DNA from: Adineta vaga
Lineage: Eukaryota > Animalia > Rotifera
DNA: 64,000 nucleotides
Direction of reading: 5' to 3'
NCBI GenBank assembly: GCA_021613535.1
Contig: CP075492.1
Span: forward strand, 9,052,001-9,116,000
The first letter of the stretch is position 1, and each line of letters opens with the position of its first letter. Below the pieces are notes generated by a model. That model did no database searches. It saw nothing but the letters and a program-made list of their open reading frames with translations, and was not told the origin of the DNA. Positions 43,026 through 46,042 of this stretch are shown here, in pieces. The position numbers and the translations under genes are program-made.

Positions 43026-43403
43026 ATCTGAAAACAGACAATATTGAGTTTAATAATCATTAGAATATCCAATTAACACAAACTTTGTCTTTATAAGGAA
43101 ATATGTTCCAATACTGATTAAATATAGAGATAAGCAATAGACTTTAGAAACTTGAGACACATAACGGTAATAACTAGGTTAATTGAGTTTCGTTCTCATT
43201 AAAAATTTAACATCATCATAAATAAAACAGAGATTCTTTCTTTCTTATGCAAAAATCTAACAAAAGAAGTTTATTGCAACAAAAATAAATGAAACAACCA
43301 TACACATATTACATATATAGAAATCACCAAATCTGAAAGCTTGAATAACCTCTCTCCATTTATTCATAAACACACATAAAACAAAAACGAAAAATAATAT
43401 CCA

Positions 43404-44438
43404 CTATAATCTCTCACCAACACGAATCTTCTCACCAGTATGACGAGCAAAATGAAATGTCGATGGCGCTTCAAATACTAATACAATGCAAGAACCTAAT
43501 TTAAACTCTCCAAATGCATCACCTTTATCGAATGACATCTGATCAGTTGATTGAAATTTTTCTTTCCACATACGAAATGTATAATCATCTAATTTCTGAT
43601 TTGTTTTCAATGTTTTATCAGCATAAATATCAATTGAGCCAACATTTGTTGCACCAATCATTGTTTGAGTCATTAAACCATGTTGATATTCACCCAAATA
43701 AACGACACGTTCATTAAGTAACAATAAATTTGGTATCCAAATAATAAATTCTGGTCGAACACTCATCAATTCACCTGAAAACAAAAGAAACAATAATAGT
43801 ATTACTTGCTTGTTCAATTCAATATTACCGGTAATATGTCGACGTTCACGAATCTTCCATTTTGCAGGACTATGAAAATGATGATAATTACCAGGATTTA
43901 AATAAATACATGTATAGAAAAGTGATGATTCAGATTGTTTTTCTTGTAGACGTTCAATTTCATATTGATCAAATTGAAATAAATCTTTTATTGTATATGG
44001 AATACCTTTAACAACGATATTTAAATTTTCTACTGATGTTACTAAACCATTCGCCAAGACTTCTCCATCACATGGTGAAACAACTAAACTTTCAGGATCG
44101 ATTGGACGTACACCGGGTTTAAGATTTCGTCGAAAAAATTCACCAAAATTTGCATAGTAGTCAAGATGATCAGGACCATGTTCACATTCGTTAATATCAC
44201 CATCAAAAACACGACAAAAATATTTATAAATCGGATTTCGAAAAGAACGAGGATAGATATTCACAGAAAGTAAACGTGACCAAAAGCGAGATGTTTGACG
44301 TAATGGTAATGAACGATACCAAGCTTCATTTGATGTACATAAAGATTCACGTTTAATATTAATCGAACGGGTATAATGATAAGCAGTGAGAGCAGAGACA
44401 GTTGTTAATGAAAGACATCGACCAATAGGGAAATTCAT
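43404..44438 (-). CDS. PISD: Mitochondrial-type phosphatidylserine decarboxylase proenzyme
   Basis: FGEFFRRNLKPGVRPI, VSPCDG, YLNPGNYHHFHSP, NERV, GATNVGSI, FKLGSC autocleavage site; in-frame 54-nt intron 43775-43828. Confidence 0.95.
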   Translation of the reverse strand: MNFPIGRCLSLTTVSALTAYHYTRSINIKRESLCTSNEAWYRSLPLRQTSRFWSRLLSVNIYPRSFRNPIYKYFCRVFDGDINECEHGPDHLDYYANFGEFFRRNLKPGVRPIDPESLVVSPCDGEVLANGLVTSVENLNIVVKGIPYTIKDLFQFDQYEIERLQEKQSESSLFYTCIYLNPGNYHHFHSPAKWKIRERRHITGNIELNKQVILLLFLLFSGELMSVRPEFIIWIPNLLLLNERVVYLGEYQHGLMTQTMIGATNVGSIDIYADKTLKTNQKLDDYTFRMWKEKFQSTDQMSFDKGDAFGEFKLGSCIVLVFEAPSTFHFARHTGEKIRVGERL

Positions 44439-44750
44439 TCACGACGGATATGTTGACGACGAATAGGTTGTTGTTTTGTTGGAGTAGTTGGGGTTGGAGT
44501 TGTTTGTTGAATTGGTTGTTGATCGTTATTATTTATTTGAAATAAAGCTCGTATAACTCCAAATCGACTTAACACTAATTTCCACAAAAGATACCAAGCT
44601 GAAGAGAAAGACAATTTTGTTTTTCAATGAAATAAAATGATAAGAATATGTTTAGTTACATAGAGCGATAATAGCTAAAGCAACAGCAACGGAAACAATC
44701 GTAGATATGATTAATGCAAACCAATAACGTATGGAATGATCTTCAGTCAT
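44435..44750 (-). CDS. SMIM13: Small integral membrane protein 13-like, 84 aa, 2 exons (not in the ORF track)
   Basis: Exons 44750-44660 and 44598-44435 give MTEDHSIRYWFALIISTIVSVAVALAIIALSWYLLWKLVLSRFGVIRALF...RRE*; WYxxWxLxLSxF matches the SMIM13 motif as I recall it. Confidence 0.75.
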
Positions 44751-44907
44751 TACTTAAACATTTGAATAATCTAGAAAGTATAAAAGATTAAATATTTTTT
44801 GTTGTTTTTTTCTGTGTTTTATTCACATTTCGTGATTGTTTATAAAACAAGAAGAAAAAAGAAAAGAAAAGAAAAAGAAGTCTAATCAGTAACTAATTGG
44901 ATTTGTT

Positions 44908-46042
44908 TTAAAAATTCATTGTTTTTTCCTCGCGATATTGATACATGTAATCATTCGTATCTTTTTCTTCGATCTTCTCCCAACCCGTTTCTTTCATATG
45001 ATAAACTAAACAAATCAAATCATCAGAATGAACAATGTAAAGAATGTCTATTTACTTCGAACAATATTTCCGGAAGCAGCATCACGATGTGCAGCATGTA
45101 CAATAGCTCGACGAGCGAGATCAATTGCATCAGCAGTACTCATTTCATATCTAAACAAATTATCAATCGAGTTTAAGTAAAGTGATATATGCTAAATTTA
45201 ATTCTCTTTACTTGTAACCAGCATCAAGTATACTGTATGCATAGATTGATCCACTACCAACTGAAAATAGATTATCACTGATACGTTCACCATCATCGGA
45301 TACCATATATAAGCCAGGACCCTAATTCGCACAAAAAAGAAAGAGAAAATGAACATTTATTTTTTTGTTACGATGCAAGTCAATACATACTCGTTTATCC
45401 CAACCAACAATCATTGTTCCCATGGATAAGCCCATACCACGATATTCAAAAATCATGTTTGCTAAAATTTTCGAAGCAGCAGCTACTGAAATCTTCTCCT
45501 TGTTTCGTAATTCATAGATACGACATTGACGAGCAAGAACACGTTCCCAAAAGGCACAATCTGCAGCACCACCAGCCATTGTTCCCAATAAATATGGATT
45601 GATTTCAATCACTTTTTTAACTTCTCCCGAAGCTATAAAAATCAATGATATAACACTTTTTAGTAAACATAAAGTTCAAAACAAAACAAACCGATGAAAC
45701 CACCCGCTGTGGCACGACTGTCAACAGCTACTATAACTCCATTACGGAATTTGAATGCTAATGTTGTTGTACCTTTAAGAAATTGTATTTTTACTCGATC
45801 AACTTTTTCATTGACCATTTTTAAATATTTAGCTGGCTTGAAAAGAAAAATATTCAATCAAAGAATAAATAATACAAAAAAATCTTTACATCAGCATAAG
45901 GTGGAAGTGTAATAAATTGTGCGATATTTTCAATATTCAATGTTGGACAAAATTCATCAATATTACTATCCGTTTTCTTACATTGAAGTGAACGATCAAA
46001 TTCAGAATTAGATTTGAAACCAAGTACATTAGCTAAAGCCAT
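44908..46042 (-). CDS. PSMB5: Proteasome subunit beta type-5
   Basis: Propeptide then [54 protein letters not shown]. Confidence 0.96.

Follow-up and report, generated by a model that had tools for sequence, protein, structure and literature searches.

The minus strand of the Adineta vaga window (the whole stretch of DNA that was analyzed, 64,000 nucleotides) carries, in close succession, a tiny upstream ORF (uORF), a small SMIM13-like ORF, and a PISD gene, each of the latter two containing one short intron. The initial annotation had described these elements as a uORF-TAATG-SMIM13-ATGA-PISD chain, in which each stop codon overlaps the next start codon, and every coordinate of this chain holds on the minus strand. 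The features of the locus, listed in the direction of transcription, are as follows.

44910-44908, minus strand: stop codon of the upstream proteasome-subunit gene, 157 nt ahead of the SMIM13-like ATG
44847-44817, minus strand: conserved upstream block, TTTTATAA..CAATCACGAAATGTGAATAAAA, from an alignment of 10 bdelloid loci
44780-44771, minus strand: predicted spliced-leader acceptor tactttctAG (AG at 44772-44771); the mature 5' UTR would begin at 44770
44761-44750, minus strand: uORF of three codons, ATG TTT AAG TAA, read in the sequence
44750-44748, minus strand: SMIM13-like ATG, its A being the final A of the uORF (TAATG), read in the sequence
44750-44660, minus strand: SMIM13-like (DUF4750) exon 1, with the start, N terminus, and transmembrane helix; 30 codons + 1 nt
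44659-44599, minus strand: SMIM13-like intron, phase 1, 61 nt, GTAACT..TTCAG
44598-44435, minus strand: SMIM13-like exon 2, with the conserved WYLLWK.VLSRFGVIRAL motif, a G-poor, Q/P/T-rich tail, and the RRE-TGA end
44587-44585, minus strand: Leu codon TTG directly 5' of TGG, a rare codon; TTA or CTA would make an out-of-frame ATG
44527-44525, minus strand: Asn codon AAC directly 5' of GAT, a rare codon; AAT would make an out-of-frame ATG
44438-44435, minus strand: ATGA overlap of the SMIM13-like TGA (44437-44435) with the PISD ATG (44438-44436); the ORFs overlap by 4 nt
44438-43829, minus strand: PISD exon 1, 203 codons + 1 nt; PF02666, 80.7 bits; N terminus M.FP.GRC.SL.. kept in relatives
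43828-43775, minus strand: PISD intron, 54 nt, in frame and stop-free; its 18 codons are absent from mRNA L016 and from the 326-aa relatives
43774-43404, minus strand: PISD exon 2, with the LGS self-cleavage motif and a TAG stop; PF02666, 72 bits

The junction between exons 1 and 2 of the SMIM13-like gene is matched by the spliced relatives L016, L024, and L038, and the split codon (T+CT) preserves the frame, giving a total of 84 codons that end CGT GAA TGA. A plain ORF finder passes through the PISD intron and returns 344 aa with 18 spurious residues, as against 326 in relatives. The small-ORF intron is itself in frame and open in several lineages, including L025, for which gene callers give read-through products of 94-98 aa.

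Exon 2 of the window alone scored 28.1 bits against Pfam PF15938 (DUF4750; cut-off 27), the two exons having been searched separately and joined only for ATG counts and dN/dS, with the naturally spliced contigs L016, L024, and L038 and the intronless L033 as references for the joined ORF. Full-length relatives of the small protein scored 36.9-42.5 bits over profile positions 5-53 of 54, and its Atlas neighbors are DUF4750 clusters from arthropods and plants. DUF4750 is presumably the family of human SMIM13. The small protein has 31 invariant residues, and its dN/dS between the window and other sequences was 0.06-0.25 (dS 0.5-2.3) over an ungapped block of 52 codons. Because of these invariant residues and a dN/dS of ∼0.1, the peptide sequence is, as judged from substitution patterns, under purifying selection; the SMIM13-like ORF of the initial annotation is real, by profile as well as by selection. 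The PISD matches cover profile positions 1-97 and 101-196 of the 198 in PF02666, and the KLGSC of exon 2 contains the G-S self-cleavage motif. PISD is under purifying selection as well, and selection of this kind on the two ORFs is indirect evidence that both are translated.

Exon 2 of the small ORF is single-copy in the genome (a 100.8-Mb assembly of six contigs), and other PISD-like genes of the genome, considered as a second copy of the locus, were rejected as paralogues of 32-36% identity. Two candidate links between human SMIM13 and lipids were also rejected: the lipidome GWAS locus labeled with this gene maps to a splice variant of the neighboring ELOVL2, and the correlation with SMIM13 expression in liver is weak. 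No study of SMIM13's own function was found in the literature searched.

The ∼30-nt conserved block at 44847-44817, situated 45-75 nt 5' of the leader acceptor, includes a minimal ATG TGA and is shared by environmental bdelloids as well as by Adineta and Rotaria; it may represent either a TATA-like promoter followed by a short outron or the region that holds the poly(A) signal of the proteasome gene. Downstream of PISD, the next gene on the same strand (43025-42461, minus) is COX20-like, with a weak Pfam match of 16 bits that falls below the cut-off. The gene at this position in Didymodactylos carnosus (L036) carries PF12597, and the order of proteasome gene, small ORF/PISD, and COX20-like gene is kept in that species. 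The environmental contigs L011-L015 keep the layout, with downstream ORFs that received no Pfam call.

Conservation of the overlap and of the AUG-free first cistron

The locus was compared with those of Adineta steineri, Rotaria magnacalcarata, R. socialis, Didymodactylos carnosus, and many environmental bdelloid contigs. All bdelloid loci fetched, which amount to 18 distinct sequences and take in the deep-branching Didymodactylos, have GAATGA at the junction of the two ORFs, and the ATGA overlap is therefore not a chance arrangement. The small protein always ends in RRE, save for RSE in one sequence, and the intron position of the small ORF is kept in all lineages but L033, which is genomic (with the proteasome gene upstream) yet intronless and retains the two-ORF layout. 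Two word-based searches for relatives of the small protein outside the bdelloids gave bdelloid-like sequences only, and the upstream small ORF is absent at two distant PISD matches from unrelated organisms (L037 and L043).

Four NCBI contigs of A. steineri and R. magnacalcarata (L007-L010) stop 1-78 nt past the small-ORF stop, just inside PISD, and two independent R. magnacalcarata assemblies break there at the identical base. These may be assembly or haplotype breaks.

As the initial annotation had stated, the spliced SMIM13-like ORF of the window contains no internal ATG in any frame. The chance of this in one lineage is ∼1.5-2%, by synonymous resampling and by shuffling. Across the bdelloids, adjacency, overlap, and AUG depletion are conserved together: no ATG in any frame lies between the two starts in 15 of the 18 sequences, and the 18 together hold four internal ATGs, where 40 are expected from synonymous resampling and 69 from shuffling. 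The ATGs that do occur belong to a tandem in-frame ATGATG start (L031 and L038), to an ATG TTC TAA mini-ORF (L038), and to a 17-codon out-of-frame ORF (L036).

The depletion can be followed to individual codons, and all three codon pairs able to create an out-of-frame ATG avoid it. The Leu codon before Trp is TTG in 16/16 lineages, as against ∼80% TTA or CTA in other Leu columns; Asn before Asp is AAC in all 13 lineages that have Asn there (the remaining three have GAC or CCT), with neighboring Asn columns being ∼88% AAT; and TCA is never used for Ser before Trp. By comparison, two to five ATGs are present in the first 243 nt of PISD. Depletion of AUG between the starts of the first and second ORFs, as expected for leaky scanning, argues for scanning 40S subunits that would reach PISD.

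In 13 of the 18 bdelloid sequences there is a uORF of 2-8 codons, whose end falls in the interval from -3 to +4 of the main AUG; it lies within the mature mRNAs L016 and L024. The base at -3 of the main AUG is A or G in 11 of these 13 and C in two; in each of the five sequences that have no uORF it is T, and acceptor and AUG are just 4-13 nt apart. This association of uORF and -3 base comes from few, poorly resolved lineages. In the PISD tree, itself poorly resolved, the uORF-less lineages are not grouped and the outgroup Didymodactylos has the uORF; repeated loss is suggested by this small sample. In the window the -3 base is G for the SMIM13-like AUG, whose context is therefore not weak, and T for the PISD AUG. 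Because of the G at -3, leakiness in the window would depend on the uORF. The uORF, earlier proposed to divert ribosomes to PISD, cannot be the obligatory route, since it is missing from 5/18 sequences.

Spliced mRNAs and the spliced leader

The mRNA contig L016 (1294 nt) starts with ACCAAGAG, continues with ATTATTGTA, and then enters a uORF, ATG TTT TGA, downstream of which an intron-free small ORF of 77 codons overlaps a PISD of 326 codons. The first element, ACCAAGAG, corresponds to the 8 bases at the 3' end of the rotifer spliced leader, whose published sequence is GGCTTATTACAACTTACCAAGAG (PMC3795323). A TTCTAG/ATTA acceptor is invariant in 10/10 aligned loci. Since TTCTAG precedes ATTA in the genomic relatives and ACCAAGAG precedes the homologous ATTATT in L016, the leader is joined at this site, which corresponds to 44771/44770 in the window. 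The leader junction, sought in the fetched loci, was present in L016 only.

The Adineta vaga genome contains 42 copies of the spliced leader, each with a GT donor directly after it. Many of the spliced-leader RNA genes (e.g. contig 1, 2551160-2551336) are arranged in divergent pairs ∼155 nt apart, with further clusters on contigs 2 and 5, and the genomic leader begins with T in place of the published G.

Other RNA-derived contigs carry the same pair of ORFs. L024 is spliced and has both ORFs in the layout of L016, and both ORFs are likewise present in three spliced contigs obtained from separate runs of another lineage (L038, L039, and L040). In L039 an Illumina adapter abuts a leaderless 5' end ∼20 nt upstream of the acceptor; from this end, a form that is not trans-spliced exists in the L038/L039 lineage. 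The longer leaderless 5' end (positions 1-40 of L038/L039) brings in a second uORF of six codons. Two more RNA-derived contigs are incomplete at the 5' end and have no leader. The prediction that one spliced mRNA carries both ORFs is thus confirmed in three related bdelloid lineages (L016; L024; L038-L040). These relatives share 82-87% PISD identity, and by homology a spliced-leader-capped mRNA with both ORFs, as observed among them, would also be made in Adineta vaga.

Access to PISD

Taken together, these data make it probable, though by no means certain, that the locus is a genuine bicistronic bdelloid gene, encoding a SMIM13-family microprotein and PISD, in which PISD is reached by scanning past the first AUG. 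The primary transcript would receive the 23-nt spliced leader at TTCTAG/ATTA (44771/44770) and lose both small introns, giving a mature mRNA of ∼1.3 kb with, in order, the tiny uORF, the 84-codon microprotein, and PISD. PISD would then be translated by cap-scanning 40S subunits that have not initiated at the microprotein AUG. Such a bypass could occur in two ways: the AUG may be skipped outright (leaky scanning), or the uORF of 2-8 codons may be translated first, with scanning resumed and competence regained only further downstream. As the 225-255 nt leading up to the PISD AUG are kept AUG-free, the next start met would be that of PISD. In the uORF-less lineages, leakiness of the start would instead come from the T at -3 and the short distance of 4-13 nt from acceptor to AUG. 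Start-site choice on a single mRNA would set the ratio of microprotein to PISD.

The pattern points to scanning-dependent access to PISD and not to an IRES. A search for known RNA families, IRES-like elements included, in 43200-45000 gave only two sub-threshold chance matches, and the first cistron showed no stable RNA structure (z = +0.1 to +2.0).

Neither the invariant 4-nt overlap (ATGA) nor the RRE terminus is accounted for by leaky scanning alone, and termination-reinitiation may therefore contribute. As the main route, it would have the whole microprotein translated, with some 40S subunits restarting on the overlapping AUG after the UGA stop. AUGA and UAAUG overlaps count as its hallmark (PMC3035654, PMC10275272). 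The ATGA and the RRE-stop are kept across the 18 sequences, although synonymous sites are near saturation in comparison with Didymodactylos. Against this stands the length of the first ORF, 74-87 codons, which is long for unaided reinitiation in eukaryotes. The TURBS-like motif UGGGA occurs in 0/18 sequences, the longest complement to the genome's own 18S rRNA is 10 nt, as in shuffled sequences, and AUG depletion over the entire first cistron, which favors scanning, is not predicted by reinitiation. The translational coupling at ATGA put forward in the initial annotation is consequently disfavored, and we regard termination-reinitiation as an unlikely principal route, if one to be taken seriously.

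The preferred reading, scanning on a bicistronic mRNA, must also be weighed against PISD being made mostly from a monocistronic mRNA of its own, with a leader added at the 44599 acceptor or another AG, or with an internal promoter, and the two-ORF RNA serving the microprotein only. In bdelloids, over half of the mRNAs are trans-spliced (PMC1925144), and an AG lies 1 nt before the PISD ATG in several lineages. None adjoins that ATG in seven sequences, including the window, where, as had been noted, no polypyrimidine-AG directly precedes it: the closest AG lies 109 nt away on the 5' side, without a pyrimidine tract. L033, which has lost the intron and thus the internal acceptor, keeps the two-ORF layout. 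An internal leader junction was found in none of the seven RNA-derived contigs searched, and no monocistronic PISD message was present among them, with the proviso that assembled contigs drop rare isoforms and that a minor form of this kind could be missed. Nor does any transcript contig start at the 44599 acceptor, the case that had been named as speaking against a shared mRNA, and an acceptor with a leader on the downstream cistron, the mark of a leader-resolved operon, is seen neither in the window nor in the RNA contigs. A separate PISD mRNA also gives no reason for an AUG-depleted first cistron, and we consider it improbable as the main source of PISD.

Less likely again is that the small ORF is a mere regulatory uORF of PISD whose peptide has no function. 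It does sit in the PISD leader, and its translation must lower that of PISD; nonetheless, the DUF4750 match above the curated cut-off, the 31 invariant residues, and the dN/dS of ∼0.1 are at odds with a functionless peptide. Barely credible is a programmed frameshift or alternative splice that fuses the ORFs into one membrane-anchored PISD: canonical animal PISD does have a longer N terminus with a membrane segment (L037) where that of bdelloids is short, but in the window a TGA lies directly 5' of the PISD ATG in the PISD frame, no slippery site was seen, the two frames stay separate in all spliced RNAs, and the PISD initiator Met and N-terminal motif are conserved.

With a bicistronic mRNA as the favored reading, the locus offers a functional lead, in that the uncharacterized SMIM13 family is tied to mitochondrial phospholipid synthesis across the bdelloids. 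We suggest only tentatively, and with rather low expectation, that the microprotein is a dedicated partner of PISD at the inner mitochondrial membrane (e.g. a membrane anchor, an assembly factor, or a regulator of phosphatidylethanolamine synthesis), the shared mRNA fixing the ratio of the two proteins and the uORF making that ratio respond to eIF2 status in stress such as desiccation. If true, this would be the first functional assignment for the SMIM13 family, and the locus could stand for a wider class of leader-capped yet bicistronic mRNAs in bdelloids.

Comparison with known systems

Truly bicistronic nuclear mRNAs are few in animals, and the mechanism of their translation is usually obscure; no report of bicistronic mRNAs in rotifers was found in the literature searched. 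The combination of an invariant 4-nt overlap with fixed, AUG-avoiding rare codons would constitute a clear evolutionary signature of scanning-dependent access to a second cistron. The locus would also be a boundary case for spliced leaders, in which a leader-using animal, perhaps with operons, leaves a gene pair unresolved on one mature mRNA.

With caliciviruses and influenza B, in which AUGA or UAAUG is accompanied by a TURBS, the bdelloid locus shares the overlap of stop and start; it differs from them in having neither the TURBS motif nor 18S complementarity, and an AUG-free first cistron does not characterize those viruses. In the ORF35-ORF36 mRNA of KSHV, uORF2 overlaps the start of the 5' cistron and diverts ribosomes, which reinitiate downstream by linear scanning (Kronstad et al. 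2013, PMC3561293). The short bdelloid uORF likewise overlaps the start codon of the 5' cistron. Unlike the viral mRNA, however, the bdelloid one is cellular, its uORF has 2-8 codons and is lost in 5/18 sequences, and the bypass function is a putative one.

As in the spliced-leader operons of nematodes and tunicates, the genes are tightly packed on the same strand and the leader is found at the 5' end of the unit. In contrast to those operons, the bdelloid cistrons are left unseparated, with no acceptor before the second cistron in the window, and the mature RNA is bicistronic.

AUG depletion and leaky scanning have been described for the bicistronic mRNAs of green algae (Duenas et al. 2025, PMC11892635). 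There, as here, a mature nuclear mRNA carries two conserved ORFs, with AUG under-represented before the start of ORF 2. The weak ORF 1 context of the algal mRNAs is matched only in the uORF-less bdelloid lineages, whereas in most bdelloid lineages ORF 1 has a purine at -3 and is preceded by a tiny uORF. The bdelloid mRNA is, furthermore, that of an animal, bears a spliced leader, and has a 4-nt overlap between its ORFs, and leaky scanning on it is a prediction from sequence.

The well-known dicistronic genes of Drosophila comprise 159 pairs, and 13 of the polycistronic pairs overlap briefly in different frames (Crosby et al. 2015, PMC4528330). Both these and the present locus are animal nuclear loci with two unrelated proteins on one mRNA, in Drosophila only sometimes with an overlap of a few bases; the bdelloid case differs in belonging to a rotifer, in its spliced-leader cap, and in an avoidance of AUG that is documented codon by codon.
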